From: Mobula hypostoma
Lineage: Eukaryota
Reading direction: 5' to 3'
Assembly: GCF_963921235.1 (NCBI RefSeq)
Contig: NC_086098.1
Location: 240,064,001 to 240,128,000 of the forward strand
DNA: 64,000 nt
Part shown: positions 1,041-60,473 of the stretch, piece after piece
Layout of the letters: each line of letters begins with the position of its first letter
Position numbering within the stretch: the first letter of the stretch is position 1
Position numbers and translations under genes: made by a program
Notes under the pieces: model-generated
The model's input: only the letters and a program-made list of their open reading frames with translations
What the model was told of the DNA's origin: nothing
Databases searched by the model: none

Positions 1041-1094
1041 TATACTCAAACTTTGAACTGTATCCGGTGGTAAGACAGAATCAAGACAGCTGCA

Positions 1095-1444
1095 GAGAGA
1101 GTCAGATGCAGTGGATGATCATGACATCCTTAATGCCATGACATCTATCATGCTCTAAGCACTCCACAGTTTCTTGGTGGGTCCGCCATTGAGCCACACT
1201 AGTGGGTTCCTCCACACAGTCTTTGCCAGCTTGGGTAGGCAAGCCCAAACTCACCGAGGGTTTAAGACCCATTGATTACCCTCACCTGGTTTAGCCTGAT
1301 CATCGAAGCACTGTTGCTAGTAAACAGCTGCTTGGAGTCACAGATGTGAGCTAAGTGCCAAGTGGGGACTGGACCATTGGTGGTCGAACTTCTCCCAAGG
1401 GGGCATCAGAAGTGCTACTCTTCCCTGACACCTCATACGGACCT
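1095..1444 (-). mobile_element. Old decayed copy of the RTE-type non-autonomous retroposon at 38328/42090
   Basis: Minus strand reads GTCCCCACTTGGCACTTAGCTC...GGCTAAACCAGGTGAGGGTAA, colinear with the full copies but with internal deletions. Confidence 0.7.
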
Positions 1445-10415: not shown

Positions 10416-11899
10416 AGCCTGTGGGTCCTCTCCGTAACTGCATGGGGTTCCTCTCACACAACCCAGCCATATAATGTTAAGTATAGTGGCCTCTGGTGTT
10501 CTGAGGTGGCAAAAGGACCAAAGGGGTACTGACAGGAACATGGGGCTTCAGGGGATACAGAGGATAGGGACTGCTTTGCCACCTAGGCCAGATAGTTTAT
10601 GTCATAATATGGACATTGTGTAGGCAGAGGGGATTAGTTAGGTTGACCATTTGATTACTAATTTGATTGGATCAGCCCAACATTGTGGGCCAAATGACCT
10701 CTTCCTGAGCTGTACTGTTCTATTTATTTATTTTATTTAGAGATACGGCACAGAAAAGGTCCCTCTGGCCCTTCGAGCCATGCCCACCCAGCACGCCTGA
10801 CCACCTCAATGTAACCCTAATCTAATCACAGGACAATTTACAATAACCAATTAACCTACCCGCTACAGCTTTGGACTGTGAAAGGGAACTGGAACACCTG
10901 GATAAAACCCACAGATTCCACAGGGAGCAGTGCAGACTCCTTACAGATGACCATAAGACCTGTTCTATGTTCTATAATTGTATAGCATAGAAACAGGCCC
11001 TTCAGCCCTCTGTGTACTTACTGACAATGTGTCCTAATGTGCTGGCAGATTTAAAACTGGTTTAACTAATTGAAAATAAAATTCCCAGTGTGATGAGAAT
11101 TGAATACAAGACTCAGGATCAATACACTCCCCCATCCCCAAGGCTGTGGAATAACACGCATCCGACAGACAGGTGACACCTTAATAAAAAATCAAGGAGG
11201 ATGTCTCTGGGCTCAACTTATCCACTCCTTACTTCTGAGAGGAATAACCTCTTAACCTCTTCTTCAGCCTCAGCCCTCTCTTCCACAAACCACGTGTGAA
11301 GAGAGCTGGGAATTAAGTTCCTCAGCTCTGCCCTCAAACCCCCCCCCCCCCACTTTGCCTAGGTACTTACCAACAGTAAAACAGCCTGCTATTTCCCTGA
11401 CGTATTTTAAGGGATGCTTTAATTACCAACACTAACACCCACCTTTCCACATCTCTTACTGTAATAGTTCCTGTCTGTTTGTTTTTCGTTGACAATTTTA
11501 AGTACATGTGCAATATATATTACTGGAACAATGTGTTTGCCTCTGAATATTACTTCTATCTGAGATTATGATCTCTTCTACTGGCACATCCTCCCTGCGC
11601 TTGCGATAGCAATCTCCTTGTTCGAATGGTGATTTTTAATTATCTTTTTTTTCTGTTTCGTGCAAACCACGAAACCACAATTTTTCACACATTTAAAAAA
11701 AGAATCTCACTCTCCAACTTGAGATGAGCTACTGCTCTCTGGCGACAAGGGAATAACCAGCGCAGAGCAGGTGAAGAAGCTGTTTTGCCAGCTGAGTGTG
11801 TGAGCTCTGCTGCCAGGGTTATCAAAACTGCCACTTGCCACTCTCTGCCTCCCCACAGACCCACAGCTCTTTGCCTACCAGAGTGCTAATCTCACATCT

Positions 11900-18755: not shown

Positions 18756-20184
18756 ATAAGTGCAACTCCAATAACCCTCAAGAATCATGACACCATTGCG
18801 ATGAAGCAGCCACCACCCTCCATGCATCCTTCCACCACTGCAATGTGTACTGCCTACAAAATAGACTGAGGTTACTTGCCCAGGCTTCCCCAACAGCACC
18901 TGCTCACCAACAAGGATAAAGGCAGCAGGGCAGGATAACACCATCACCTGCAGGTTCCCCTCCAAGTCATACACCAACATGGGAAGATATTATTTCTCCA
19001 TCACTATCAATCGCAGAATTGCCTCCTCAGAAGCACCATGGGAGGACATCCACCACATGGACTGCAGTGGTTCAAGGGATGGGAGGGGGTGCTTCACCTC
19101 CACTTTCTCAAAGGGAAGAAAGGAATGGGAAATAAATGCCCTAGTTTCCAAAATGTTTAAATAAAGTTAGAAAGGTGAGTGGGGTACCCAACTATTCACT
19201 GCATTATCGATCTATTTATGAAGCATCCTTACCTCAACTCCATTTGCTCTACATTTGTTCAAAATCTTGCACGAAAGGGTCAAAACCTTTCAACCCTGAC
19301 AGTCATACAAAGCAGAAACAGGTCCTTTGGCCAAACTGGTCCTTGCCAACCAAGATTCACATCTACATTAGTCCCATTTGCTTGCATTTGGCCATGTCCC
19401 TCTAATTCTTCCTATGCATATACCGTTCAAATTAAATTATTTGCCTCAAGCACTTCCTCTGGCAGCTTGATCTATCTACTGACCATCCACCGGGTGAACA
19501 AGTTACCCCTCAGGTTCCTGGTAATTCTCTCCCCTCTCACCTAACCCTGTGCCCTCTAGTTCTTGATTCCTCAACCATGGGGAAAGAAAGACTGCAACCT
19601 TTATGCCCCTTTTGATTTTATATATCTTGATAAGGCTATCCATCATTCTCCTATGATCCAATGAAAGAAAGATCCAACCAATTCAACCTCTCTTCATACC
19701 TCATTTATTTTTTTCCCTTATTCAAAGGAATTCACTAAATGGTTACAAACACCGCACAGACCACTGGTGAACCCCACGAGAACCACTGCATGGTCACAGA
19801 ACATACAGCATTACAGCACAGTACAGGTCCTTTAGCCCACAATATTGTGCTGACCTTTTAACCTACTCCAAGATCAATCTAACTCTTCCTCTCACATAAC
19901 CCTTCATTTTTCTTTTATGTGCCTATCTAAGAGTTTCTTAAATGTCTCTAATGTATCTGCGTCTAACACCAACCCTGGCAGGGCACTCCACACATCCACC
20001 ACTCACTGTAAAAAACCTACCTCTGACGTTTCCCCTATACTTTCCTCCAGTCACCTGAAAATTATGCTCTGTTGCATTAGCCATGTCTGCCCTGCGAAAA
20101 AGGTGCTGGTTGTCCACATCTATCTCTGCCTTTTATCATCTTGTACACCTCTATCAAGTCACCTCTCACTCCTCCTTCACTCCA

Positions 20185-21010
20185 AGAATGTCAGCAAGAC
20201 CAAGGAACTGATTGTAGATTTCAGGAGAGGGAAACCAAAGGTCCATGAATCAGTAATCATTGGAGGATCAGAGGTGGAGAGGGTCAGTAACTTTAAATTC
20301 CTGGGTGTCACTATCTCAGAGGACCTGTCCAGGACACATCATATAAATGTAATTGCAAAGAAAGCACAACAGCACCTCTACTTTCTCAGGAGTCTGCGGA
20401 GATTTGGCATGACATCAAAAATCTTGACAAACTTCTATAGATGTGTAGTGGAAAGTGTACTGACTGGCTGCATTGCAGCCTAGTATGGAAACACCAATGC
20501 CTTTGAGCAGAAAATTCTACAAAAGATAGTGGATTTGGCCCAGTACATCACAGATAAAGCCCTCCCAACATTTAGCACATCTACATGAAACGCTGTTGTA
20601 GGAAAGCAGCAATCATCAAAAATCCTCACCACCCACTAGGCCATGCTCTTTGCTCACTGCTGCCATCAGGTAGAAGATACAAGTGCCTCAGGACTCGCAC
20701 CACCAGGTTCAAAAACAGTTACTACCCTCAAACCATCAGGCTCTTGAACAAAAGAGGATAACTCCCATCATCTATTGAGATATTCCCACAACTAATAATC
20801 TCACTTTAAGGACTTTATCTTGCTATTTCATGCTCTCATTGTTTATTGCTATTTATTTATTTATATTTGCATTTGCAGTTTGTTTACATTTTACTTGTTA
20901 TATTTACTATTCTATAGATTTGCTGTGTATGCCTGCAGGAAAATGAATCTCAGGGTTGGATGTGGTGACATGTATGCACTCTTGATAATAAATTTGACTT
21001 TGAACTTTGA
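20185..21010 (+). mobile_element. Rex1/Babar-like LINE 3' part inserted in a minus-strand CR1 tail (~19800-21090)
   Basis: NVSKTKELIVDFRR...FKFLGVTISEDLS...AQQHLYFLRSL...FYRCVVESVL. (ACTTTGA)n tail. CR1 sequence resumes on both sides. Confidence 0.85.
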
Positions 21011-33520: not shown

Positions 33521-34558
33521 CCGCCCACCCCCCCCCGACAGTGCAGTGCTCCCTCAGCATTGTGTTTCTGTGCTGAGCTTCTGGAATCTAGCGCACAGCT
33601 CCCTGACTCAGGAGTGAAAGAACCAACCGATGGGCCACAGCTGACAATGCAGACAAGATATTTACTGGCAGGGTGACTCTTGGTGGAGTTTACGGAAAGA
33701 ATCAAGCTCTACAGGAATGAATCGGCTGTAGATGGTTTTGCTCTCCTTACACACTGAGAGTATGCTGCCGTCTCATGGCCACAGCTAGTAACAGATGACC
33801 TATTTTCAACAACCACACAGTTGCATATTGCACCTTTCCCTGCCTCAGAACCTCCTGGCGGCCTTCTGCTGTGCAAAAAGATGGTACTGAGGAGGTAGCA
33901 CCGCACAGCATGAAGAGCAATAAGGAGAGACCATTGTACTGCAGAAGAGATGGCGCCAAGCCTGTGGGATGGGCACAGCAAGACTCCACCAGCAGTCCAC
34001 ATCATCTATCTCTCTATTTAAGAATACAATGAACAGGAGCAGAAGGCTATATTGTTCCTGCTGCATCATTCAGTAAAACAACAATTGATCTCAGTTTCAT
34101 CATCAATTTCCTGCGCAATCCCCATTCCTCTCTGTGGTCCACGTCCATAGAACATGGACCAGTCCACGGAAGGTGAATGGAAATGAGACCAGGATCTGCC
34201 TGTCTTCACAAATTATTCAGCAACTCTGTCACCCAGCTTAACGCAAACACTCTGCAACACTCTAAAACAAGCCTATTTATCCCACCTAAATAAAGGGACC
34301 TATGGTATATGCAGTGCTTCAGGTGTGGTCTCACCAATACCCTGCAAAGTTGCATCTAACATTTGCACTCCATACCCTTTTCAAAGTAGGCTGTGGGATA
34401 AACCCCGTCCCCAGAGTCTGGCAGATATCCTTATAACTGGCAAGACTGAGATAGGGCACTATCAATCTGTTGCTGAGGGAAGAACAATGGCCAAGAACTC
34501 AGAGACGTATGGCACCAAAACAGTCCCTTTGGCCCACCATGTCCATACTGACCATCTA

Positions 34559-34995
34559 GTATCCGCCACACTAAACTCATTTACCAACGTATCCAGTATC
34601 TGCCACACCAATCTCATTTACCAACGTATCGAGTATCTGCCACACCAAACTCATTTACCAACGTATCGAGTATCTGCCACACCAAACTCATTTACCAACG
34701 TATCAAGTATCTGCCACACCAAACTCATTTACCATCGTATCCAGTATCTGCCACAACAAACTCATTTACCAACGTATTGAGTATCTGCCACACCAAACTC
34801 ATTTACCAACGTATCGAGTATCTGCCACACCAATCTCATTTACCAACGTATTGAGTATCTGCCACACCAAACTCATTTACCAACGTATCGAGTATCTGCC
34901 ACACCAATCTCATTTACCAACGTATCCAGTATCTGCCACACCAATCTCATTTACTAATGGATCGAGTATATGCCACACTATTCCTGTTTACCAAT
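34559..34995. repeat. 37-bp minisatellite (~11-12 units)
   Basis: Unit GTATCTGCCACACCAAACTCATTTACCAACGTATCGA at 34596, 34633, 34670, 34707, 34744 and onward. Confidence 0.93.
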
Positions 34996-35084
34996 GCAGA
35001 CAGCTTTTGTCAGGTTTTACAAAAACATGGAGGATTTGACTTCCAGCCACAGGAAACATCCAACTGGTAGCTACAAACTGGGAC

Positions 35085-35945
35085 CTATCCCTGTAATACC
35101 CTCCCTCCTCCAACACACAAACTCCTCCCTATCTCTATAACCTCCTCTGGTCCATACACCCCTCTGACCTGTGCACCCCTCTCTACCACTGTAACCCCCT
35201 CTGGTTCCCACACTTCTTCCTATATCCATAAACACCTCTGGCATGTACACTCCTTCCTATCTCTGTAACTCCCTCCTCCAGCCTATACACCCCTCCCTAA
35301 CTCTGTAACCCCCACTCTGGCCCCCACACCCTCTCCATCTCTGTAACCCAACCCCCCCCCCCCCGGCTTCCACACCCATCTCTATCTTAGTAAACTCCTT
35401 CAACCCATACACCCCTCCCTATTGCTGTAACCTCCTCTGGTCCGTACACCCCTCCCTATCTCAGTAACTTCCTCCGTCCCCCATCTCCGTAACTTCTTCA
35501 GCCACCAGACTCCTCTGTGTCTCCGGCCCTCATACTGTAAACCCCTGCAGCCTCACACCCATCCTTATCTTAGTAAACTCCTTCAACCCATACACACCTA
35601 CCCATCTCCGTAACCTCCTCTGGTCCTCACACCCCTCCCTATCTCTGCAACTTCTTCCAGCACTCACATAACCCATTACAGAAAACTCCTTCAGCCCTAT
35701 TGCTGTAACCTTCTCTGACCCGTATACCCCTCCCTATCGCTGTAACCACATACAGCCTGTACACCCCATCCATCTCTGTAACCCCTCCCACGCCCACATC
35801 CATCCCCAACTCCATCAGTGTAACCCTCTCCAAACTATATCCCTGCTTCTGTAATATCCAGCAGTAAGTCCTCCCTTTTTCTCTGATCACTATATTCCTC
35901 CAACATCGGTCTCTAAGCATCCTCCAACTCCCTACACCCTACCCT
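35085..35945. repeat. Degenerate ~36-37-bp C-rich tandem repeat; second patch ~24915-25250
   Basis: Recurrent ACACCCCTCCCTATCTCTGTAACCTCCTC units. Confidence 0.75.
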
Positions 35946-36162: not shown

Positions 36163-38327
36163 CTAGACAAAACGAGAATATATCGAGAATTCACTCCACA
36201 ATAGATAAAATACAGTCCACCATCTGCTCATACGCTAAATTTTTCATTTGGAGATCATGGAGGAGGTTACTGTTTTTGTAACTCCAAAAACTAATCAAAT
36301 AAGACATGGGAACTCAGGAAAATATGCTTACTTTGTTTTATACTTTAGTGAGGTGTGCACATATGATATGGTGGTGTAACGATGCATGCCATTCATGTAC
36401 TTTTTATACAACCTGTAATTAATCTGGAGCCAGAACAGAGTTCTGGGCTGAGGTTTGAAACTGACAGATGTTGAAGTTTATAAAATTACGAGAACCACAG
36501 ATGGAATAGACAGAATCATTTTTTCCTAGGTTGAAATGTCAATTAATAGAGAGTATAGCTTTAAGGTGGGAAGGAGGAAGTTTAGAGGAGGTTTGGGCGG
36601 CAGATTTGTTTATATATACAGAGAGTGCTGGTTGTCCAGAACAAGCTTCCAGGGAAGGTGATATAATAGATGTTTAAGAGAAATTTGGAAAGACACATCA
36701 ATATGCAGGAAATGGAGGCATACGGACCAATTAGGACTAGAAGGGATTAGTTTGGCATCATGAGTCAAAGGGCCTGTTTCTGTGCTGTAATATTCTACGT
36801 TCTATGGACCACAGGGTAGTGGAAGGCAACGGGGAGAGTGCGAGAAAGCGATGACATGGCTGAGAATGATCAGCCATTGTCTTACTAAATGACAGAGCAG
36901 CTCGATGGGCTGAGTACCTCCCACTCCCGTTCATTTCCTGCTGCCTGGGAACTTAGTCCATAGTCGCATTTCTAATGGGTTATGGATGCATCACAAGAAC
37001 AAAAACATGGGAACGTCATATATAGAAAATTACGAAAGGTACGGTAACCAGCAGGAAACATTCTCCCATATCAGAGCCAAGACTACAGGAGACATGGATT
37101 TAGATGAGGGTCAAATTGGAAAGGTAGGGTACGGACTGAATTGAGCAGTGGGGCCAGGGCCCGAGAGCACAGTGAAGTGGCAGGGCCTGGGTCTGCGAGT
37201 GAGAAATGACCCGGGGTTCGGACGATTTAAGTGTCGGGCCAGATTGAAAAGGTCAGGATGCCGGGGCTGGAGGTGAGAAATGTGCTGGTTCAGCTCACTG
37301 CTTTGCAAGGTTTACCCATCTCTGCACTGAACTGAGGCAGTGGCCTGCAACTAACAGGCTACCAGATCAGCCACAGTGATGACTGGCTTCATGGCGGTGG
37401 ACTCACTTTGGTGAACTTCAGTTGTTTGCTTGCTTTTTGCTCTTTGTACAATGTGTGCTTGATGGTCTTTTTTAAAATGAGTTCCATTGGGTCTCTTTGT
37501 TTTGGTGGCTACCGGTAAAGAAACTAATCTCACGGTTGTACATAGTATACATTGATAATAAGTGTACTTGGAAGAGATTTAGAGGCAGGACCTTTTTCGC
37601 TCAGACACTGGGCGAGTACGTGGAACAGTGCCTGTGAGCAAGAAGGAAGCAGAGTTGAACAAGTTCCCAAATAAGCACATGAATCACTGAATCACTGAGG
37701 CTCTGGGCCAATGCTGGAAAATGAAACTAATGTGGATAGGGGTGCTGCAAGCTGAGTTGGCAATGTACCTTCCACTCTTCTGACAATGGTTGAACAAGCA
37801 ACCTCACGGTTCATTAGGTGGGACAGGGTCATCAGGTGAGTGACTCAAGGTAAAAGTGCAAGGGGAAACAAATGAGCATGTAAATCATGGAGGCGTAGAA
37901 GGCTCTGGGCCAATGGAACTGCTTTAACACTAAGTCTCAGTGGAGAGATGGGAGGCTTAGTAATGAATAAACATAAAAATGTGCCAATCGTATATTGGGT
38001 AGGAATTATAATGAGGTAACAATAGTGTAAACTAGGGGTCTAAAGGGATTCATTCATTGCTACAGATGGCAGTGGAGGCCAAGTCATTGGATATATTTAA
38101 AGCAGAGGTTGAAAGGTTCTCAATCAATAATGGCATCAAAGGTTACAGGGCGAAGGCAGGAGAATGGGGTTGTGAAGAAAAATAAATTAGTCATGATCAA
38201 ATGGCAGAGCAGACTCAAGGGGCCAATGGCCTAATTCTATTACTAGGTCTTGTTTCTTGAGTACCAAAATACAGTGATTCAGGAATAGCTTCTTTCCCTC
38301 TGCCATCTGATTCCTAAATGGACATTG

Positions 38328-38519
38328 GGGGTGCATGGGGTATCAGGGAGGGGTAGCACCTCTGGTGGGGGAACATGTCACGTCCTTTTCAAGGCGGTTA
38401 GTCCACCTTTGGTCCCCACCTGGCACTCAGCTCTCACCTGTGGCTCCCTGTAGCTGTTTGCATGCGATAGCAGCCACACTCCGGGCAACGGCTTCGACAA
38501 GCCGGGTAAACCAGGTGAG
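38328..38519 (+). ncRNA. HDV-like ribozyme fold with the catalytic-C position as G
   Basis: P1 GGGGTG 38328-33/CACTCC 38477-82. P2 CTCACCTG 38433-40/CAGGTGAG 38512-19. P3 GGC 38442-44/GCC 38473-75. L3 TCCCTG. P1.1 CC/GG 38483-84. GCAA. P4 CGGCTT/AAGCCG. J4/2 G-G-TAA. Confidence 0.6.
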
Positions 38520-38859
38520 GGTAGCCGACGGGTCTCAGACCCTCGGTGAGATAGGGAGTTGTCTATCCCAGCATGTGAAGACAGACTCCGGCGGATTGAG
38601 TGGACGAGACCAATGGAAGGTCCAACGGTCAAGAAGGCGGTCTCTGCAAGCGTCGTGGAATGTGTAGAGCAGGACAAGACACAGAAGACATCCTGGTCAT
38701 CCACTGCGCCTGATCCCATCTCCAGCCGTCTCGACTCTGTCTTGCCACTGGATCCAGATGGGAATTGGGAATAGAGAGTGAGGCTGACGCTACGCAACCC
38801 TCCCTCACTTTAATCCAAATCACACGCGGTCCTGATCGACGTCGATGATGGATGAACAC
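38328..38859 (+). mobile_element. Full-length RTE-type non-autonomous retroposon with 5' HDV-like ribozyme fold (copy 1)
   Basis: 12-bp TSD AAATGGACATTG 38316-38327 and 38860-38871. Non-coding. Short AC-rich tail. Homologous to 42090-42640. Confidence 0.85.
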
Positions 38860-39604
38860 AAATGGACATTGACTCTTTGGACACTACCTCACTTTTTTTT
38901 TATATACAGTATTTCTGTTTTTGCACTTTTAAAAATCTATTCAACATATGCAATTGATTTACTTGATTATTATTTTTCATTTTATTTATTTTTTTCTCTC
39001 TGCTAGATTATGTATTGCATTGAACTGCAGTACATAAATTTCACGTCACATGCCGGTGATAATAAACCTGATTCTGAAAGCTGTTGTGCCATCTAGACAG
39101 ATCGCGCCATACACATTGAGGTAGTAAAAAGGATACAGAATCCAGAATATAGTGTTACAGTTAAAGAGAAAGTGCAATGCAGCAGAACTAATAAATTGCA
39201 AAGGCCATGATGCAGTAGACCCTGAGATTAAGAGCTCCTCTTATATAAATCATGATGTATATGTGATAAATAAATGGGAATCTGAATTTGAATGTGAACT
39301 TGTAGGTAGCAACAGGATTAACAAAGTACAAGCACAATTCTGGAGCTGACTTTTGCTAAATTAGAACCACAATGCAATTAATGTGTTTGCTGACTGAACT
39401 ATCTCATAAAGTCAATTGTTCTGCTGACACAATGGTTGCGCTCTGAGCTGCTTGTTTAATATATCATCATTCAACCATTTACATGTATAGCACCAATGTG
39501 ACGTTTACCAGGAGGTTTGTAGACAAAGGGCTCAAAGCATTGTTGAGGATCTCTACCATCCATCCCACAATCTTTTTGACCCACTACCATCAGGAAAGTG
39601 ATAC

Positions 39605-40868
39605 ATAGAAACATAGAAACATAGAAAATAGGTGCAGGAGTAGGCCATTCGGCCCTTCGAGCCTGCACCGCCATTTATTATGATCATGGCTGATCATCCA
39701 ACTCAGAACCCTGCACCAGCCTTCCCTCCATACCCCCTGATCCCCGTAGCCACAAGGGCCATATCTAACTCCCTCTTAAATATAGCCAATGAACTGGCCT
39801 CAACTGTTTCCTGTGGCAGAGAATTCCACAGATTCACCACTCTCTGTGTGAAGAAGTTTTTCCTAATCTCGGTCCTGAAAGGCTTCCCCTTTATCCTCAA
39901 ACTGTGACCCCTCGTTCTGGACTTCCCCAACATCGGGAACAATCTTCCTGCATCTAGCCTGTCCAATCCCTTTAGGATTTTATACGTTTCAATCAGATCC
40001 CCCCTCAATCTTCTAAATTCCAACGAGTACAAGCCCAGTTCATCCAGTCTTTCTTCATTTGAAAGTCCTGCCATCCCAGGAATCAATCTGGTGAACCTTC
40101 TTTGTACTCCCTCTATGGCAAGGATGTCTTTCCTCAGATTAGGGGACCAAAACTGCACACAATACTCCAGGTGTGGTCTCACCAAGGCCTTGTACAACTG
40201 CAGTAGTACCTCCCTGCTCCTGTACTCGAATCCTCTCGCTATAAATGCCAGCATACCATCCGCCTTTTTCACCGCCTGCTGTACCTGCATGCCCACTTTC
40301 AATGACTGGTGTATAATGACACCCAGGTCTCGTTGCACCTCCCCTTTTCCTAATCGGCCACCATTCAGATAATAATCTGTTTTCCTATTTTTGCCACCAA
40401 AGTGGATAACTTCACATTTATCCACATTAAATTGCATCTGCCATGAATTTGCCCACTCACCCAACCTATCCAAGTCACCCTGCATCCTCTTAGCATCCTC
40501 CTCACAGCTAACACTGCCGCCCAGCTTCGTGTCATCCGCAAACTTGGAGATGCTGCTTTTAATTCCCTCATCCAAGTCATTAATATATATTGTAAACAAC
40601 TGGGGTCCCAGCACTGAGCCTTGCGGTACCCCACTAGTCACTGCCTGCCATTCTGAAAAGGTCCCGTTTATTCCCACTCTTTGCTTCCTGTCTGCTAACC
40701 AATTCTCTATCCACATCAATACAATCAATACCTTACCCCCAATACCCTGTGCTTTAAGTTTGCACACTAATCTCCTGTGTGGGACCTTGTCAAAAGCCTT
40801 TTGAAAATCCAAATATACCACATCCACTGGTTCTCCCCTATCCACTCTACCAGTTACATCCTCAAAAA
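39605..40868 (-). mobile_element. Young 5'-truncated CR1 LINE with an open RT frame
   Basis: ORF 39703-40914: YLDFQKAFDKVPH, GVPQGSVLGP, KFADDTKL, no stops. (TTTCTATG)n tail at 39605-39625. Splits a Rex-like 3' region. Confidence 0.93.
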
Positions 40869-41103
40869 ATACGGGAGCATCGAGCATCGGGACTAGGATT
40901 GCCAGACTGGGCAACAGCTTCTTCCCTCAGGCTGTGAAATTAATGAATACTCTGCCACATCCAAGGTCTTGTCACTAGGACAGCAAGCTGTTTACCTGTT
41001 CTGCATACTGTTTATGTGCTGTGTGCAATATAGATTTTGTGGGTGTACCTTAGTCCAAGGGAATGCTGTTTCATTTTGGGTGGGTGGGTGTGTGTGTGTG
41101 TGT

Positions 41104-42089: not shown

Positions 42090-42640
42090 TGTTGTTCGTC
42101 CATCGTCGACGTCGATGAGAACCTCAACACCATTATGATGATGTCGAGACTAGCGCGTGATTTGGATTTAAGTGAGGAAGAGTTGCAAAGTGTCAGCCTC
42201 ACTCTCTGCTCCTAATTCCCATCTGGATCCAGTGGCAAGACAGAGTCGAGACGGCCGGAGATGGGACTAGGCGCAGTGGATGACCAGGACATCGTCTGTG
42301 TCTTGTCCTGCTCCACACATTCCACAATGCTTGAAGAGACCGCCTTCTTGACCATTGGACCTTCCATTGGTCTCATCCACTCAATCTGCCAGAGTCTACC
42401 TTCACATGCTGGGATAGACAACTCCCTATCTCACCGAGGGTTTGAGACCCGTCGGCTAACCTCACCTGGTTTACCCGGCTTGACGAAGCTATTGCCCGGG
42501 GTGTGGCCACTGTCGCATGCAAACAGCTACGGGGAGCCACAGGTGAGAGCTGAGTGCCAGCTGGGGACCAAAGGTAGACTAACCGCCTTGAAAAGGACAC
42601 GACATGTTCCCCCACCAGAGGCGCTACCCCATACACCCCA
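42090..42640 (-). mobile_element. Full-length RTE-type non-autonomous retroposon with 5' HDV-like ribozyme fold (copy 2)
   Basis: 14-bp TSD ACAACACATAAAGT 42076-42089 and 42641-42654. 5' GGGGTGT pairs 7/7 with ACACCCC. (AAC)n tail. Confidence 0.85.
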
Positions 42641-43921: not shown

Positions 43922-45124
43922 CTGCGGCCAAGAGATAGGGAAATTAATTTTTGAAGTGTGCCTGATATTTTGCACTAGTATGGCTGAGGTGCAGTGTTTA
44001 GCTTACACACCTTTTTTTAAAATATTCAGTATTTCTGTTTTTGCACGTGTTTTAATCTACTCAATATATGTAATTGATTTACTTATTAAATATTTTTTGT
44101 ATTTTTTTCTCTCTGCTAGATTATGTATTGCATTGAACTGCTGCTGCTAAGTTAACAAATTTCAAGTCACATGTTGGCGATAATAAACCTGATTCTGATT
44201 CTGACACACTGTGATTCAGAGGTCCGGATTAACATTCCAGACCCGGGGTTTGAATCATTCCTCAGCGCATACAAGACAGCTGAAAACACATATGGGTTAG
44301 TGTTAGTGAGTTGTGGGTATGCTTGATGCAAATAACACATTTCAGTGTACAATCCGACGTATATGTGACGAATAAAGCTAATCTTTATCTCTTTAACCTT
44401 TAAATCTAGTTCACAATCTGGAACCGGAAACCAAGCGAGGAATCAAACCCAACCAGTTCACCAAGTTTTGGCCCAAAACCTTGACCCTCCCCAGGCTGTG
44501 GCAGGTTCCTGTGCATTGTAACCCAGACAGTTCGCCAGTCAAAGATGTGGCCACAAACCAAGTTCCCACCTGACAGAAGATGCCAGTAGCCTTGCAACAG
44601 CCAGCAAATCCACCCCACCAGTTTCCCAAACATTTTCTCAGTTGTTGCAATGTCCAGCATTCGTAAGCTGGGGAGGACTAGTACATCCCTTCCCACTGAA
44701 GCCATCTCACCCACTGAAAGTTTTCTGTGAGGGGTACAGACAGGGGATACTTGCAGGGGAAACATCTACGCTCAAGAGGATGAGAGTGTGGACCGAGCTG
44801 CCAGTGGAAGTGGTGTATGCAGGTTCGACTGTAATATTTAAGAGAAGTTTGGATAAGTAAATGGGTGGGAGAAGTTTAGCGAGATATGGACTGGTGCAGA
44901 TAGATGAGACTAGGCAGAATAAGTTTGGCACAGACCAGGCAGGCCAAAGAGCCTGTTTCTGTGCTGCAGTGCTCTATGGCTCTATGGCACTTGTAGTTTG
45001 TTTCTATTTCCAATTGCTTCTCCAACATTGTTGAAAGTAGGAAGTGTTTATTTCTAAAAGCCACGCATTGGATGCATGGGAATGAAACAGTCGGAATGTT
45101 CAGCCCCTTGAATCTGCCGTTCTA

Positions 45125-45435
45125 CCATGGCCATTCCAACACTGATAACATGGGACAGAGGGTGTGGTCCCATCATGGCCATTCCAATACTAATGATATG
45201 GGACAGAGGGTGTGGTCCCATCATGGCCATTCCAATACTGATGATATGGGACAGTGGGTGTAATCCCATCATGCCACTCCAATACTGATGATATGGGGCT
45301 GAGGGTGTCGTCCCATCAAGGCTGTTCCATTACTAGTGATATGGAATAGAGGGTGTGGTCCCATCATGGCCATTCCAATACTGATGGGACAGAAGGTGTG
45401 GTCCCATCATGGCTGTTCCATTACTTGTGATGTAA
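45125..45435. repeat. Diverged units of the 48-bp minisatellite, cut off from the main array by a CR1
   Basis: GATATGGGACAGAGGGTGTGGTCCCATCATGGCCATTCCAATACTGAT units. Confidence 0.85.
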
Positions 45436-48375
45436 GGCCATGGACATAGGAGCAGAATTAGGCCTTCTGGCCCATCGAGTCTGCTCTGCCATTCGACCTT
45501 GGGTGATCCTTTTTTTCTATCTCCTCCTCAATCCCAGTTCCCAGCCATCTCCCCGTCACCTTTGATGCCATGTCCAATTAAAAACCTATCAATCTCTGCC
45601 TTAAATACACCCAACGACCTGGCCTCCACTGCCACATGTGACAACAAATTCCACAAATTCACCACACTTTGGCTAAAGAAACTTCTCCACATCTCTGTTT
45701 TGAAAGGGCGCCCCTCTATCCTGAGGCTGTGCTCTCTTGTCCTAGACTCTCCCACCATGGGAAATATCCTTTCCACATCTACTCGTCCTGGCCTTTCAAC
45801 ATTCAAAAGTTTCAATGAGATCCCCCCTCATCCTTCTGAATTCCAGCAAGTACAGATCTAGAGCCATCAAATATTCCACGTGTGATAACCTTTTCATTCC
45901 TGGAATCATCTTTGTGAACCTCCTCTGGACCTTCTCCAATGCCAGCACATTTTTTCTAAGATAAAGGGCCCAAAACTGTTCACAATGCTCCAGATGAGGC
46001 CTCATCAGTGCCTTATAAAGCCTTAGCAATACATCCTTGTTCTTATATTCTAGACCTCTTGAAATGAATGCTAACATGGGATTTGCCTTCCTCACCACCG
46101 AATCAACCTGCAAGGGTGTTCTGCACAAGGACTCCCAAGTCCATCTGCATCTCAGATTCCTGGATTTTCTCCCCGTTCAGAAAATAGTCCACTCATTTAT
46201 TTCTGTTACCAAAGTGCATGACCGTGTATTTTCCAAAATTGCATTTCATTTGCCACATTCTTGCCCATTCTCCTAATCTATCTAAGTCCTTCTGCATCCT
46301 ACCTGTTTCCTCAACACTACCTGCCCCTCCACCAGTCTTTGTATCATCTGCAAATTTGGCAACAAAGTCATCTATTCCATCCTTTAAATCATTGATATAC
46401 AGCATAAAAAGAAGTGGTCCCAACACAGACCCCTGCGGAACACCACTAGTCACTGGCAGCCAACCAGAAAAGGATCATTTTATTCCCATTCGCTGCATCC
46501 TACTAATCAGCCAATGCTCTAACCACGTTAGCAATTTTCCTGTAATACCATGGGCTCTTATCTTGGTAAGCAGCCTCACGTGTGGCCCCTTGTCAAAGGC
46601 CTTCTGAAAGTCCAAATATACAACATCCACTACATCCCCTTTATCTATCCAACTTGAAATCTCCTCAAAGAATTCCAACAGGTTCGTCAGGCAGGATTTT
46701 TCCTGAAGGAAACCTTGCTGACTTTGTACTATCTTGTCCTGTGTCACCAAGTACTCAATCACCTCATCCTTAACAGATGACTCAATCTTCCCAACCACTA
46801 TGGTCAGGCTAACTGGTCTATAATTTCCTTTCTGCTACCTTCTTCCTTTCTTAAAGAGTGGAGTAACATGGGTAATTTTCCAGTCCTCTGGCACCAACAC
46901 TGGAGCCAAATGATTTTTGAAAGATAATTTCTAATGCCATCACAATCTCTAACGCTACCTCTTTCAGACTCCAAGGGTGCAGTTCCTCTGGTCCGGGTGA
47001 CTTAAGTACCTTTAAGTTTTTCAGCTTTTTGTGCAACTTCTCTTCTGTAATGGTAACCGCACCCACTTCTCTTCCTTCAAACACAACACCACCAGGCATA
47101 CTGCTAGTGTCTTCCACAGTACAGACTGACGCAAAATACTTATTTAGTTCACCAGCCACCTCCTTTCCCTCGTAATTATTTCTCCTGCCTCATTTTCTAG
47201 TGGTCCTATATCCACTCTCATTTCTCTTTTATTTTTAACATACTTGAATAAACTTTTTCTATCCACTTTGATATTATTCACTAGCTTGGTTTCATATTTC
47301 ATCTATTCCCTTCTAATGATTTTTCAGTCTCTATCTAAAGTTTTTAAAAACTTCTCAATCCTCTTTCTTCTCACTAATTTTTACTTTGTTGAATGCCCTT
47401 TCTTTTGCTTTTATAATAGCTTTGACTTCCCTTGTCAGCCACAGTTGTACTATTTTACCATTTGAGTGCTTCTTCATTTTTGGAATACACATGTCCTGCA
47501 CCTTGCTCATTTTTCCCAGAAACGCACGCCGTTGCTACTCTGCTGACATTGCTGCCAGCAGCTCCTTCCAATTTACTTTGGCCAACTCCTCTCTCATGCC
47601 ACTGTAATTTCCCTTACTTCACTGAAATACTGCTAGATCTCTTTACTTTCTCCCTATCAAATTTCAAGTTGAACACAATCATGTTGTGATCACTGGTTCC
47701 TAAGGGTTCTTTTACCTTAAGCTCCCTAATCACCTCCGGTTCATTACATAACACCCAATCCAGTATACCTGATCCCCCTGTAGGCTCAATGAGAAACAGC
47801 CATAAAAAGCTACCTCTTAGGCATTCAACAACCTCACTCTCTTGGGATTCATTAGCAACCTGATTTTCCCAATCAACCTGCATGTTAAAATCTCCCATGA
47901 TTACCATAACATTGCCCTTTTGACTCGCCTTTTTTACTTCCTATTGTAACCAGTGGTCCACCTCTTCCAATCCTATGTCATATCTTTCTACTGATTTGAT
48001 GCCATTCTTTACCAGTAGAGCCACACCACCCCCTCTGCCTACCTTCCTATTCCTCCAATAAAACGTGTAAACTTGGACATTCAGTTTCCAACTACAGCCA
48101 TCCTTCAGCCACGATTCAGTGATGGCTACAACATCGTACCTGGCAATATGTAATATTGCAACAAGATCATCCATCTTATTTCTTATACTATGCGCATTTA
48201 GATACAACACCTTGAGTACCGTATTTGTTATCCTTTCTGACTCTGCATCCCTAATGATTTGATACTCAGCCTGTTGGCTGCAACTAAGTCCCATCACCTG
48301 CCTGCCCTTCCTAACAATCACACTGCACGCTATCTTTACTTTTTTACCATCCATCCTTTCCTGAGTCCCTTCACT
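45436..48375 (-). mobile_element. CR1 LINE with APE endonuclease and RT (decayed)
   Basis: VLYLNAHSIRNK...AITESWL, IMGDFN, LGTSDHNMI, LDFQKAFDK, GVPQGSVLGP, KFADDTK, ESRTREHSLRI, with frameshifts. Confidence 0.9.
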
Positions 48376-48379
48376 CAAT

Positions 48380-51300
48380 CCCTTCGATATGGGACAGAGA
48401 GTGTGGTCCTGTCATGGCCGTTCCATTCCTGGTGATATAGGACAGAGAGTGTGGTCTCAATGTGGCCGTTCCAATACTGACAAGAGATAGCAGGTAAGGT
48501 CCCATTACTGACGATATGGGACAGAAGGTGAGGTCCCGTTGTGGCCGTCCAGTCACTGACGATATGGGACAGAGTGTGAGATCCCGTCGAAGCCGTCCAG
48601 TTACTGACGATATGGGACAGAGGGTGAGATCCCGTTGTGGCCGTCCAGTCACCGACAATATGGGACAGAGGGTGAGATCTCACTGTGGCCGTCCAGTCAC
48701 TGACGACATGGGACAGAGGGTGAGATCCCGTTGTGGCCGTCCAGTCACTGACGATATGGGACAGAGGGTGAGATCTCACTGTGGCCGTCCAGTCACTGAC
48801 GATATGGGACAGAGGGTGAGATCTCACTGTGGCCGTCCAGTTACTGACGATATGGGACAGAGGGTGAGATCCCGTTGTGGCCGTCCAGTCACTGACGATA
48901 TGGGACAAAGGGTGAGATCTCACTGTGGCTGTCCAGTCACCGACGATATGGGACAGAGGGTGAGATCTCACTGTGGCCGTCCAGTCACTGACGATATGGG
49001 ACAGAGGGTGAAATCTCACTGTGGCCGACCAGTCACTGACGATATGGGACAGAGGGTGAGATCCCGTTATGGCCGTCCAGTCACTGACGATATGGGACAG
49101 AGGGTCAGATCTCACTGTGGTCGTCCAGTCACTGATGATATGGGACAGAGGGTGAGATCTCACTGTGGCCGTCCAGTCACCGACGACATGGGACAGAGGG
49201 TGAGATCTCACTGTGGCCGTCCAGTCACCGACGACATGGGACAGAGGGTGAGATCTCACTGTGGCCGTCCAGTCACCGACGATATGGGACAGAGAGTGAG
49301 ATCTCACTGTGGCCGTCCAGTCACTGACGACATGGGACAGAGGGTGAGATCCTGTTGTGGCCGTCCAGTCACTGACGACATGGGACAGAGGGTGAGATCC
49401 CATTGTGGCCGTCCAGTCACCAACGATATGGGACAGAGGGTGAAATCTCACTGTGGCCGACCAGTCACTGACGATATGGGACAGAGGGTGAGATCCTGTT
49501 GTGGCCGTCCAGTCACTGACGATATGGGACAGAGGGTGAGATCTCACTGTGGCCGTCCAGTCACTGATGATATGGGACAGAGGGTGAGATCCCGTTGTGG
49601 CCGTCCAGTCACCGACGATATGGGACAGAGGGTGAGATCGCACTGTGGCCGTCCAGTCACCAACGATATGGGACGGAGGGTGAGATCTCACTGTGGCCGT
49701 CCAGTCACTGACGATATGGGACAGAGGGTGAGATCTCACTGTGGCCGTCCAGTCACCAACGATTTGGGACAGAGTGTGAGATCTCACTGTGGCCATCCAG
49801 TCACCGACGATATGGGATAGAGTGTGAGATCTCACTGTGGCCGTCCAGTCACTGATGATATGGGACAGAGGGTGAGATCTCACTGTGGCCGTCCAGTCAC
49901 CGACGACATGGGACAGAGGGTGAGATCTCACTGTGGCCGTCCAGTCACCGACGACATGGGACAGAGGGTGAGATCTCACTGTGGCCGTCCAGTCACCGAC
50001 GATATGGGACAGAGAGTGAGATCTCACTGTGGCCGTCCAGTCACTGACGACATGGGACAGAGGGTGAGATCCTGTTGTGGCCGTCCAGTCACTGACGACA
50101 TGGGACAGAGGGTGAGATCCCGTTGTGGCCGTCCAGTCACCAACGATATGGGACAGAGGGTGAGATCTCACTGTGGCCGTCCAGTCACTGATGATATGGG
50201 ACAGAGGGTGAGATCTCACTGTGGCCGTCCAGTCACCGACGATATGGGACAGAGGGTGAAATCTCACTGTGGCCGACCAGTCACTGACGATATGGGACAG
50301 AGGGTGAGATCCCGTTATGGCCGTCCAGTCACTGACGATATGGGACAGAGGGTCAGATCTCACTGTGGTCGTCCAGTCACTGATGATATGGGACAGAGGG
50401 TGAGATCTCACTGTGGCCGTCCAGTCACCGACGACATGGGACAGAGGGTGAGATCTCACTGTGGCCGTCCAGTCACCGACGACATGGGACAGAGGGTGAG
50501 ATCTCACTGTGGCCGTCCAGTCACCGACGATATGGGACAGAGAGTGAGATCTCACTGTGGCCGTCCAGTCACTGACGACATGGGACAGAGGGTGAGATCC
50601 TGTTGTGGCCGTCCAGTCACTGACGACATGGGACAGAGGGTGAGATCCCATTGTGGCCGTCCAGTCACCAACGATATGGGACAGAGGGTGAGATCTCACT
50701 GTGGCCGTCCAGTCACCTACGATATGGGACAGAGGGTGAAATCTCACTGTGGCCGACCAGTCACTGACGATATGGGACAGAGGGTGAGATCCCGTTGTGG
50801 CCGTCCAGTCACTGACGATATGGGACAGAGGGTGAGATCTCACTGTGGCCGTCCAGTCACTGATGATATGGGACAGAGGGTGAGATCCCGTTGTGGCCGT
50901 CCAGTCACCGACGATATGGGACAGAGGGTGAGATCGCACTGTGGCCGTCCAGTCACCAACGATATGGGACGGAGGGTGAGATCTCACTGTGGCCGTCCAG
51001 TCACTGACGATATGGGACAGAGGGTGAGATCTCACTGTGGCCGTCCAGTCACCAACGATTTGGGACAGAGTGTGAGATCTCACTGTGGCCATCCAGTCAC
51101 CGACGATATGGGATAGAGTGTGAGATCTCACTGTGGCCGTCCAGTCACTGATGATATGGGACAGAGGGTGAGATCTCACTGTGGCCGTCCAGTCACCGAC
51201 GACATGGGACAGAGGGTGAGATCTCACTGTGGCCGTCCAGTCACCGACGACATGGGACAGAGGGTGAGATCTCACTGTGGCCGTCCAGTCACCAACGATA

Positions 51301-53690
51301 TGGGACAGAGAGTGAGATCTCACTGTGGCCGTCCAGTCACTGACGACATGGGACAGAGGGTGAGATCCTGTTGTGGCCGTCCAGTCACTGACGACATGGG
51401 ACAGAGGGTGAGATCCCGTTGTGGCCGTCCAGTCACCAACGATATGGGACAGAGGGTGAGATCTCACTGTGGCCGTCCAGTCACTGATGATATGGGACAG
51501 AGGGTGAGATCTCACTGTGGCCGTCCAGTCACCGACGATATGGGACAGAGAGTGAGATGTCACTGTGGCCGTCCAGTCACTGACGATATGGGACAGAGGG
51601 TGAGATCTCACTGTGGCCGTCCAGTCACCGACGACATGGGACAGAGGGTGAGATCTCACTGTGGCCGTCCAGTCACCGACGATATGGGACAGAGAGTGAG
51701 ATCTCACTGTGGCCGTCCAGTCACCGACGACATGGGACAGAGGGTGAGATCTCACTGTGGCCGTCCAGTCACCGACGATATGGGACAGAGAGTGAGATCT
51801 CACTGTGGCCGTCCAGTCACCGACGACATGGGACAGAGGGTGAGATCTCACTGTGGCCGTCCAGTCACTGACGATATGGGACAGAGGGTGAGATCCCGTT
51901 GTGGCCGTCCAGTCACTGACGATATGGGACAGAGGGTGAGATCCCGTTGTGGCCGTCCAGTCACTGACGATATGGGACAGAGGGTGAGATCCCGTTGTGG
52001 CCGTCCAGTCACTGACGACATCGGACAGAGGGTGAGATCCCGTTTCGGCCGTCCAGTCACCAACGATATGGGACAGAGTGTGAGATCTCACTGTGGCCGT
52101 CCAGTCACTGACGATATGGGACAGAGGGTGAGATCCCGTTGTGGCCGTCCAGTCACCGACGATATGGGACAGAGGGTGAGATCTCACTGTGGCCGTCCAG
52201 TCACCGATGATATGGGACGGAGGGTGAGATCTCACTGTGGCCGTCTAGTCACCGACGATATGGGACGGAGGGTGAGATCTCACTGTGGTCGTCCAGTCAC
52301 TGGTGATATGGGACGGAGGGTGAGATCTCACTGTGGCCGTCCAGTCACTGACGATATGGGACAGAGGGTGAGATCCCGTTGTGGCCGTCCAGTCACCGAC
52401 GATATGGGGCAGAGGGTGAGATCTCACTGTGGCCGTCCAGTCACCGATGATATGGGACGGAGGGTGAGATCTCACTGTGGCCGTCTAGTCACCGACGATA
52501 TGGGACGGAGGGTGAGATCTCACTGTGGTCGTCCAGTCACTGGTGATATGGGACGGAGGGTGAGATCTCACTGTGGCCGTCCAGTCACTGACGATATGGG
52601 ATAGAGTGTGAGATCTCACTGTGGCCGTCCAGTCACTGACGATATGGGACAGAGAGTGAGATGTCACTGTGGCCGTCCAGTCACCGACGATATGGGACAG
52701 AGGGTGAGATCCCGTTGTGGCCGTCCAGTCACTGACGACATGGGACAGAGGGTGAGATCTCACTGTGGCCGTCCAGTCACTGACGATATGGGACAGAGGG
52801 TGAGATCCCGTTGTGGCCGTCCAGTCACCGACGACATGGGATGGAGGGTGAGATCTCACTGTGGCCGTTCAGCCACTGGTGATATGGGACGGAGGGTGAG
52901 ATCTCACTGTGGCCGTCCAGTCACCGATGCTATGGGACGGAGGGTGAGATCTCACTGTGGCCGTCTAGTCACCGACGATATGGGACAGAGTGTGAGATCT
53001 CACTGTGGCCGTCCAGTCACCGACGATATGGGACGGAGGGTGAGATCGCACTGTGGCCGTCCAGTCACCGACGACATGGGACGGAGGGTGAGATCTCACT
53101 GTGGCCGTCCAGTCACCGACGACATGGGACAGAGGGTGGGATCCCATTGTGGCTGTCCAGTCACCGACGATATGGGACAGAGGGTGAGATCTCACTGTGG
53201 CCGTCCAGTCACCGACGAAATGGGACAGAGGGTGAGATCTCACTGTGGCCGTCCAGTCACTGACGATATGGGACGGAGGGTGAGATCTCACTGTGGCCGT
53301 TCTGTCACCGACGATATGGGACAGAGGGTGAGATCTCACTGTGGCCGTCCAGTCACCGACGACATGGGATAGAGGGTGAGATCTCACTGTGGCCGTCCAG
53401 TCACCGACGATATGGGACGGAGGGTGGGATCCCATTGTGGCCGTCCAGTCACCGACGATATGGGACAGAGGGTGAGATCTCACTGTGGCCGTCCAGTCAC
53501 CGACGATATGGGACGGAGGGTGAGATCTCACTGTGGCCGTCCAGTCACCGACGATATGGGATAGAGGGTGAGATCTCACTGTGGCCGTCCAGTCACCGAC
53601 GATATGGGACGGAGGATGAGATCTCACTGTGGCCGTCCAGTCACCAACGATATGGGACAGAGGGTGAGATCTCACTGTGGCCGTTCTGAC
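48380..53690. repeat. 48-bp minisatellite, ~5.3 kb (~110 units), TRIM intron 1
   Basis: Unit GATATGGGACAGAGGGTGAGATCTCACTGTGGCCGTCCAGTCACTGAC. 16-aa periodic ORFs on both strands. Confidence 0.97.
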
Positions 53691-58985: not shown

Positions 58986-59867
58986 TACGCCATGAGGGAG
59001 CAGAGCTGAGCAAGGATGTGAAATTACCATAATGAATAGCGTGCAAGGAATAGTGAGGTGGTGTTCATGGACCGTGCAGAAACCTGGTGGTGGAGGTGAA
59101 GAACATTGTTCCTGAACTGTTGTGTGGGTCTCCAGGAATAGTGAGGTGGTGTTCATGGACCATGCAGAAACCTGGTGGTGAAGGGGCAAAGGCTGATCCT
59201 GAACTGTTGTGTGGGTCTTCAGGAATAGTGAGGGCATGTCCCAGATGGTGAGGTCCTCAGCAATAGATGACCATCTCTTGAAGACGTTCTCGATGATGGG
59301 GAAGGTTGTGATCGTCACAGAGCTACAACCCTCTGCAACCTTTTGCAATCTTGTGCATTGCAGGTTTCCATACTGGGCTGCAAAGCAACCACTCAGAATG
59401 CTCTCTAGTGTACATGTGGAGAAATTTCTGACAGTCTTTTTAGTCACACAGTAAATCTCCTCAAACTCCTAATGAAGTAAAACCACTGGCATCCCTCAAT
59501 CTTTGGTTTACTTCAAAGAATTCTCAAATTGTTTAACTATATTTGTATATATAAAGATTCATATTTGCAGATCTACTTATAAGAATTACTTATTTCCTGC
59601 TAACTTCTCTAATTTGCTTTGAATCATCAGAAATATTTAACCTTTAACCTAAAACTCGCACTCATCTACAGATGTACTGCATCACCCTCTGTTATGGGTG
59701 GGGGGATCTACTTCAGAGGTGCAGAGAGTTGTAAACGTAGTCAGCTCCATCATTGGCACTAGCCATGGTAGAATACAGAACATCTCCAAAGAGCGATGCC
59801 TCAAGGTGGTGGCATCTGCCATGAAAAACCCCCTCACCCAAGTCATGCCCTCTTCTCATTGCTACCA

Positions 59868-60473
59868 GCGCCTTTACTTCCTGAGGAAACTGAAGAAATT
59901 TGGCCTGTCCCCTAAAACCCTCACTAATTTTTATAGATGCACCGTAGAAAGCATTCTTCTAGGGTGCATCACAACCTGGTATGGAAATTGTCCTGTCCAA
60001 GAACGGAAGAAGCTGCAGAAGATCGTGAACACGGCGCAGCACATCACGCAAACCAATCTTCCGTCCTTGGACTCACTTTACACGACATACTGTCAGAGCA
60101 GTGCTGCCAGGATAATCAAGGACACGACCCACCCAGCCAACACACTTTTCGTCCCTCTTCCCTCCGGGAGAAGGCTCAGGAGCTTGAAGACTCGTACGAC
60201 CAGATTTGGGAACAGCTTCTTTCCAACTGTGATAAGACTGCTGAACGGATCCTGACCCGGATCTGGCCGTACCCTCCAAATATCCGGACCTGCCTCTCAG
60301 TTTTTTTGCACTACCTTGCTTTCCATTTTTCTATTTTCTATTTATGATTTATAATTTAAATTTTTACTATTTACTATCAATTTGTAATCCAGGGAGTGTG
60401 AAGCGCAGAATCAAATATCGCTGTGATGATTGTACGTTCTAGTATCAATTGTTTGGCGACAATAAAGTATAAG
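59868..60473 (+). mobile_element. Young Rex1/Babar-like 3' fragment nested in an older Rex-like element
   Basis: QRLYFLRKLKKF...FYRCTVESILLGCITTWYG...NSFFPTVIRLLN. AATAAAGTATAAG end. TACCA repeated at 59863-59867 and 60474-60478. Confidence 0.8.

Follow-up and report, generated by a model that had tools for sequence, protein, structure and literature searches.

A candidate hepatitis delta virus-like self-cleaving ribozyme with an L3 hairpin at the 5' end of a non-coding ray retroposon

How does a retroposon keep an exact 5' end when the ribozyme fold that begins at that end carries the wrong letter at its catalytic position? The question is raised by a 64,000-nucleotide (nt) stretch of the Mobula hypostoma genome (contig NC_086098.1 of assembly GCF_963921235.1, positions 240,064,001 to 240,128,000 of the forward strand; hereafter the window, numbered from its first letter). 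Two young copies of a non-coding retroposon lie in it, each starting at or next to the first nucleotide, G1 (G38328 in copy 1), of a fold that resembles the ribozyme of hepatitis delta virus (HDV). Both carry a guanine where, as we take it, HDV has its catalytic C75, and C75G-type changes abolish HDV activity. An earlier note, made from the letters of this stretch, had proposed a family that still inserts full-length despite an apparently dead active site. We find instead that the family carries the catalytic cytosine. On sequence grounds we consider it likely that the head of the element is a real HDV-like 5'-processing ribozyme, with predicted catalysis and a hairpin inserted in its loop L3, heading a non-coding retroposon mobilised by a long interspersed nuclear element (LINE).

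A retroposon that begins at the first nucleotide of an HDV-like fold

Copy 1 (532 nt) lies between 12-nt target-site duplications (TSDs), and its G1 directly adjoins the 5' duplication. Copy 2 is flanked by (AC)TTTATGTGTTGT, with one additional T preceding its GGGG (TSD ACAACACATAAAGT on the + strand at 42076-89 and 42641-54; additional base at 42640), which places the 5' end of the element at the TSD in one copy and 1 nt from it in the other, just as the earlier note had read it. The two copies are 91% identical over 478 nt and stand in inverted orientation with 3.3 kb between them; copy 2 has a 13-nt deletion within the joining segment J1/2, and its tail (...GAACAACA), like that of copy 1, lacks poly(A). 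The boundaries of copy 1 are confirmed by an empty-site joint (38315>38860, with 12 ambiguous letters) in host-repeat contigs from four organisms. This host repeat, which surrounds copy 1 (38274-38327 and 38860-38921), is even commoner in contigs than the element, and many of its contigs are free of the insertion.

To follow the family, Logan contigs of eight organisms (X1, X2, X3, X7, X11, X12, X31 and X38) were aligned to the element at a likeness of at least 80%. In six of them (X2, X3, X11, X12, X31 and X38), contigs reaching 36-378 nt farther upstream lose the match precisely at 38328, which puts the family boundary at this nucleotide; X7 has 121 contigs with heterogeneous loose ends before 38328 (agreement 0.37). 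TSDs, empty-site joints and contig boundaries therefore agree on a 5' end that coincides with G1 of the HDV-like fold. Copy number is high, with thousands of matching contigs per run in all eight organisms, and the element combines TSDs, a defined 3' tail, an absence of coding capacity and many dispersed copies, as a non-autonomous retroposon without long terminal repeats (non-LTR) does.

From G1 onward, the HDV strand order P1-J1/2-P2-P3-L3-P3'-P1'-J1/4-P4-J4/2-P2' (P, paired region; J, joining segment; L, loop) is followed by copy 1, by copy 2, by a head written in the family's majority letters and by head B of the metagenome contig L001, described below. When the pairings were checked directly, every helix listed in the earlier note was present in both copies (Table 1). 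Both begin GGGGTG, and the partner strand ACAC[T/C]CC lies about 150 nt downstream, directly after P3', forming a P1 of 6-7 bp from the cleavage-site nucleotide: 6/7 in copy 1 (a C7 x A mismatch and one G.U) and 7/7 in copy 2, as had been claimed, and likewise in the family majority and in L001. P2 has a core of 8 bp (38433-40 with 38512-19) that extends to 10 bp, P1.1 pairs C38446 and C38447 with G38484 and G38483, J1/4 is GGGCAAC, and the core of L3 reads TCCCTG in copy 1 and TCCCCG in copy 2. The 3-bp P3 (GGC/GCC), the 2-bp P1.1 (CC/GG) and the L3 letters U38445 and G38450 are found in both young copies, in L001 head B and, as far as it extends, in the partial L001 head A; the old copy 3 departs from them. 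The hairpin at the end of L3 (38453-71; 5-bp stem, 9-nt loop) is a genuine family feature; its stem is kept through G.U/G-C changes, and its loop varies.

In family letters, the head shares with what we take to be genomic HDV the L3 motif U-C-C-N-N-G, the GGGCAAC junction after P1 and the G-C-N-A-A of J4/2. It differs from that presumed reference in the lengths of J1/2 (about 96 vs. 3 nt) and L3 (28 vs. 8 nt) and by two extra nucleotides before the 3' strand of P2.

Family variation respects this anatomy. Among the substitutions listed at 10% of depth or more, a list in which absence is not proof of constancy, changes are located in J1/2, at L3 positions 4-5, in hairpin loops, in J1/4 (38485) and in helix transitions that keep a pair. 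All six helix substitutions of this kind (38454, 38468, 38471, 38480, 38489 and 38500) preserve pairing. One of them, 38480 T>C, is present in 98-99.8% of depth in seven organisms and in 82% in X31, and changes the 3' strand of P1 to ACACCCC, so that the majority letters pair 7/7; another, 38468 T>C, is also the family majority and turns a G.U of the L3 hairpin into G-C. L3 positions 38448-49 read CT, CC or AA, with AA the majority in X12, X38 and X31, and no change is listed at 38445-47 or 38450.

An independent head came from an exact-pattern scan for the J4/2-P2' block, which matched a single metagenome contig, L001 (WLWI01056178.1, GCA_012271395.1); the same scans of genome contigs and viral contigs gave 0 matches, and a search for further L001-like heads through its Peptidase_M16 open reading frame (ORF) returned only the same contig. 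L001 carries a partial head A at 1-80 and a full head B from 1795, in direct orientation and 1.8 kb apart. Head B, counted from G1 through the last nucleotide of P2', is 190 nt long and has P1 GGGGTGT with ACACCCC (7/7), P3 GGC/GCC, P1.1 CC/GG, an L3 of UCCAAG plus hairpin, and J4/2 G-C-U-A-A-A-C with the catalytic C. Between ray and L001 heads, P1, P3, P1.1 and J4/2 are identical, the 3' strand of P2 is unchanged and its 5' strand has one C>U that keeps a U.G pair; J1/2, the most variable part, has strongly diverged. P4 has two pairs altered on both sides (G-C>C-G and U-A>U.G>C-G), and the L001-type P4 also occurs as a ray subfamily, seen as loose ends ...CCYGGTACACCGCTTCGACAGGCGGGCTAA in all organisms. 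A putative hairpin just 3' of the fold (38524-38545) also seems to be retained in the L001 heads despite a different sequence.

The sequence 3' of head B is unrelated to the ray element, and the bodies after heads A and B differ from each other. The occurrence of the same head on different bodies indicates that it acts as a portable 5' module, whose core stays fixed while J1/2, loops and P4 drift. Past head A, L001 (1-2056) has a Peptidase_M16 (insulinase-like) fragment with a frameshift, then an acidic stretch and an ORF for an OTU-like protease; the contig may be a ribozyme-headed retroposon with captured gene pieces.

The ORFs of copy 1 are preserved neither in copy 2 nor in L001, and the element is non-coding on that account. 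A 110-aa ORF with an ATG start (38335-38667, +) begins just past the 5' strand of P1 in copy 1; it was rejected as a candidate gene, since the 13-nt deletion breaks it in copy 2 and a stop codon interrupts it in L001.

Table 1. Coordinates of the retroposon copies and of the parts of the HDV-like head, numbered in the window (MFE, minimum free energy structure)
Feature	Position	Strand	Remarks
5' TSD of copy 1, AAATGGACATTG	38316-38327	+	Repeated at 38860-38871
Copy 1 of the retroposon	38328-38859	+	Non-coding, without poly(A); 3' end ...GATGAACAC (...GAACAC)
P1 5' strand, GGGGTGC	38328-38334	+	Pairs with 38476-82; G38328 is the predicted first nt after cleavage
J1/2, about 96 nt	38335-38430	+	Long imperfect hairpin predicted (MFE, centroid); T4 run at 38387-90
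P2 5' strand	38431-38440	+	10 bp with 38512-21, -15.8 kcal/mol
P3 5' strand, GGC	38442-38444	+	Pairs with GCC at 38473-75; invariant in young ray copies and L001
L3, 28 nt	38445-38472	+	Core U-C-C-N-N-G at 38445-50, then hairpin at 38453-71
P3 3' strand (GCC), P1 3' strand (ACACTCC; family ACACCCC) and P1.1 G's	38473-38484	+	Absent from copy 3
P4 hairpin, C-GGCTT CGAC AAGCC-G, 6 bp	38489-38504	+	Two-sided changes relative to L001 heads
J4/2, G-G-T-A-A-A-C	38505-38511	+	38506 is the catalytic position, G in copy 1, C in the family
P2 3' strand	38512-38521	+	Identical in 5/5 aligned heads
Putative hairpin just 3' of the ribozyme fold	38524-38545	+	From alignment: ray CCGACGGGT...ACCCTCGG; L001 CCAAGGGC CTAG GTCTTTGG
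3' TSD of copy 1, AAATGGACATTG	38860-38871	+	12 nt
Copy 2 of the retroposon	42090-42639	-	TSD 12-14 nt; P1 7/7; G at 42474
Copy 3, old relative, about 70% identical	1058-1443	-	Aligned to the young copies

The catalytic position in the family and in the two copies

The guanines that the earlier note had seen at the catalytic position, G38506 in copy 1 and G42474 in copy 2, are both there, and these two copies accordingly lack the catalytic cytosine that the family has. At 38506, the letter is C in 99.5% of depth in X1, 99.7% in X2, 99.7% in X3, 99.4% in X7, 99.8% in X11, 98.3% in X12, 98.5% in X38 and 95.6% in X31, the most distant organism (each share based on 37-123 contigs). The old copy 3 and both L001 heads have C at this site as well. 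In five organisms, the non-C letters together make up 0.2-0.6% of depth, which is like other rare transversions there, and a level indistinguishable from this background leaves no room for a sizeable G subfamily. At family level the active site is intact; the G is a rare variant that these two neighbours share. The idea of a family inserting full-length despite a dead active site thus finds no support in these counts or in copy 3 and L001. With the catalytic C carried by the family, little is left of the puzzle of how an element could retrotranspose with a dead active site.

What remains to be explained is the guanine of the two copies. Its co-occurrence by chance has a probability of about 1e-5, which argues that the two G share an origin. 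Apart from it, the only departures common to both copies, among the majority letters listed, are two CpG>TpG changes, at 38601 and 38661, where independent CpG decay alone is estimated to give about 1.5 common changes; among those letters, then, nothing else marks a G subfamily. Since the copies lie 3.3 kb apart and inverted, a single mutation after insertion, spread by gene conversion, is a simple explanation. Most likely, G arose in this way after insertion and then passed between the inverted neighbours, and its descent from a rare G-bearing source is improbable.

A G-bearing source would matter all the same, bringing back the question of the earlier note, as it could have been a working one, able to produce full-length copies that start at the predicted site. 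G would then be chemically competent in this scaffold, or the 5' end would be fixed by other means. The two copies are independent insertions with differing TSDs, their 5' ends are exact or off by one, and with a family frequency of at most 0.6% it is very improbable that C>G happened twice, independently, at one site. The background level of G and other non-C letters in five organisms speaks against such a source, as do the scarcity of other common departures, which independent decay can account for, the inverted 3.3-kb spacing, which favours gene conversion, and the inactivation of HDV by changes of this type. We regard a working G-bearing version as unlikely. For the same reasons we doubt that both copies were reverse-transcribed from G-bearing RNA, with a guanine that still cleaves or an exact G1 end that is independent of catalysis; in that event, the fold might direct a stop of reverse transcription or second-strand synthesis, or a transcription start site might lie at G1. 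A C-bearing source with later conversion to G is the account we carry forward.

Self-cleavage weighed against other roles of the head

The following route would connect such a source to the copies in the window. The first ~194 nt of the element would be a module of the HDV-like self-cleaving kind. Source copies, with C at the position of 38506, would be transcribed within a longer RNA, in which the nested double pseudoknot would form and the RNA would cut itself just 5' of G1, giving the retroposon its defined 5' end. The reverse transcriptase of a LINE, which probably belongs to RTE or to some other 'stringent' type, would recognise the non-poly(A) 3' tail and copy the RNA into a staggered nick, leaving TSDs of 12-14 nt. 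Both window copies would then be relics, expected not to cleave with G in place of the catalytic C.

How often would such a fold arise by chance? We used a deliberately relaxed HDV descriptor that tolerates a J1/2 of at most 120 nt and an L3 of at most 35 nt, accepts either C or G as the catalytic letter and lets 0-2 nt stand between C-N-A-A and P2'. With the descriptor anchored at nt 1, 2 of 20,000 dinucleotide shuffles passed when the whole sequence was shuffled, and 1 of 20,000 when the first 7 nt were left in place; these rates are a bound and not a clean p-value, because the descriptor was composed after the fold had been seen. Apart from copy 1, its sole match over both strands of the window (128 kb) was a weak core on the - strand, near 11.7 kb; copy 2 satisfied the descriptor after the P4 rule was loosened. 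The second match (11600-11841, -) is AT-rich and weak, has many alternative P1 strands and was judged a chance hit.

Several observations weigh against a ribozyme. Rfam gave no match to an HDV-type model (HDV, CPEB3 and drz families), whether the whole window was searched with the gathering score or 38200-38950 with an E of up to 10, where the sole match was a meaningless NiCo (E 6.4); low covariance-model scores are expected because of the long J1/2 and the L3 insert. P1, P2, P3 and P1.1 are almost invariant, so that no covariation was seen in them. Across five heads, the whole-structure covariation count was equalled by 42 of 500 and 107 of 500 shuffles and is not significant, with two-sided pair changes in P4 only. 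A 19-nt gap in copy 3 removes the 3' strands of P3 and P1 and the G's of P1.1, and the 5' strand of P3 reads GAC there, although this copy retains the L3 sequence TCCAAG with its hairpin, GGCTAAACC, in which the catalytic letter is C, and the 3' strand of P2; the 3' strand of P1 is also missing from a few low-depth variant contigs. L3 is not the short loop of ~7-8 nt expected of the class, as its 28 nt include a 5-bp hairpin between the conserved G and P3', and we know of no precedent for a hairpin within L3 among HDV-like ribozymes. Finally, J4/2 has two nucleotides more after C-N-A-A than we take HDV to have, which is unusual.

Energy-based folding adds to this list and points to a specific alternative. 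The pseudoknot-free MFE structure is no more stable than shuffles (z = -0.5), a comparison that is uninformative for a pseudoknot. Both the MFE and the centroid structures prefer to pair 38329-38334 (GGGUGY) with 38423-38428 (GCACUC or ACACUC), leaving P2 to close a separate 3' domain. This alternative partner is conserved in L001, and the variant 38423 G>A, present at 6-49% in J1/2, would turn a U.G into a U-A pair with nt 7. With family letters, P1 is worth -11.8 kcal/mol vs. -7.6 for the alternative helix, and the two are about equal in copy 1; the alternative helix may represent a competing conformer or one adopted after cleavage. It could also be the native state of a conserved structured RNA of two hairpin domains that does not cleave and whose likeness to HDV is coincidental, serving as an internal promoter, as a site for reverse-transcriptase recognition or second-strand synthesis, or as a 5' protection element. 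The missing Rfam match and the exact 5' ends of the two G-bearing copies would both suit a head of this kind, and the first 77 nt of L1Tc are promoter and ribozyme both (PMC3383444).

Such an RNA would leave unexplained why the P3'-P1'-GG block is fixed beside variable loops, why L3 keeps its U-CC-..-G, why C stays in J4/2 in more than 95% of depth, and why the complete HDV strand order starts at nt 1, which happens in shuffles at a rate of about 1e-4. R2 ribozymes have few fixed positions, which include a G of L3 and the catalytic C (PMC3774820), and the L3 G/U are important in HDV-like ribozymes (PMC3774820, PMC3386971). A non-catalytic head therefore keeps some weight, well short of what we give to an HDV-like ribozyme.

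A further possibility is that the element is an ordinary short interspersed nuclear element (SINE) with a degenerate tRNA-like head, whose 5' end is the start site of RNA polymerase III (pol III). In its favour, TAGC...TGG near nt 27-40 weakly resembles an A box, and GGTTAGTCC near nt 69-77 resembles a B box. The latter motif, however, differs between family members (38400 A>T or C) and is absent from L001. The T4 run in J1/2 would stop pol III about 60 nt into the element. ARAGORN found no tRNA-like gene and Rfam no small-RNA family, so that the head is not the tRNA-, 7SL- or 5S-derived one of a strict SINE. We consider a pol III origin of the 5' end very improbable, and self-cleavage at G1 remains our preferred explanation.

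Known relatives, neighbouring features and meaning

HDV-like ribozymes head the retrotransposons R2, RTE, Baggins and L1Tc, and the non-autonomous NARTc too, and release them from co-transcripts (PMC6765202, PMC3774820, PMC3383444). A literature search joining such ribozymes with sharks, skates or rays found no paper on both. The J1/2 of about 100 nt, which the earlier note had singled out as unusual, is a real family feature and yet an ordinary one, since the J1/2 loops of R2 ribozymes reach 216-498 nt, with anything between 23 and over 700 nt separating P1 from P1' (PMC3774820), and in large HDV-like ribozymes a J1/2 with structure has an activating effect (PMC4908430).

The closest parallels differ in instructive ways. 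In promoter-less non-LTR elements described in 2011 (cited by PMC6765202 and PMC4908430), the ribozyme likewise begins at the first nucleotide and release from a co-transcript is presumed, and its P1.2 peripheral domain resembles the long, structured J1/2 of the ray head; unlike the elements described there, the ray element is 532 nt long, non-coding and very high-copy, and its L3 has an inserted hairpin. R2 (PMC3774820) shares with it the strand order, a P1 of 6-7 bp that tolerates a top mismatch, a very long J1/2 and a variable P4, and inactive copies with active-site changes are known there too. R2 differs in being autonomous and specific for ribosomal DNA, often cleaving upstream in the 28S sequence, whereas the ray element occupies varied sites and has its predicted cleavage at its own first base. 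L1TcRz/Pr77 of L1Tc and NARTc (PMC3383444, PMC3185411, PMC4035085) is a portable 5' head common to autonomous and non-autonomous elements, much as the present head stands on the ray body and on those of L001 A and B; that module is a trypanosomatid one with a minimal ribozyme of 77 nt and is a promoter as well, whereas the ray head is known here from its sequence.

Several other features lie in the window. Between the two copies, a 403-aa ORF (39703-40914, -), the only one nearby with a reverse-transcriptase domain, matches RVT_1 (E 1e-21) and is a LINE fragment. Two ORFs that match Pfam ALKBH8_N (PF09004), at 19917-20483 (+) and 59698-60255 (+), are probably LINE remnants. Large tandem arrays, strongly GC-skewed and repeating every 33, 37 or 48 nt, are found at 30979-33xxx, 34484-35790, 45080-45424 and 48403-50000+; the long ORFs at 48375-53675, in or beside the 48-nt array, are probably array artefacts.

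If the head cleaves, rays hold a SINE-like vertebrate retroposon of very high copy number that owes its 5' end to an HDV-like ribozyme and not to a pol III promoter. The principle known from R2, RTE and L1Tc would then extend to an abundant non-coding family, and the head would be a natural ribozyme variant with an L3 hairpin beside its active site and a structured J1/2 of ~96 nt. Its many genomic copies would form a natural mutation series, in which the two G-bearing copies would be ready-made active-site controls.
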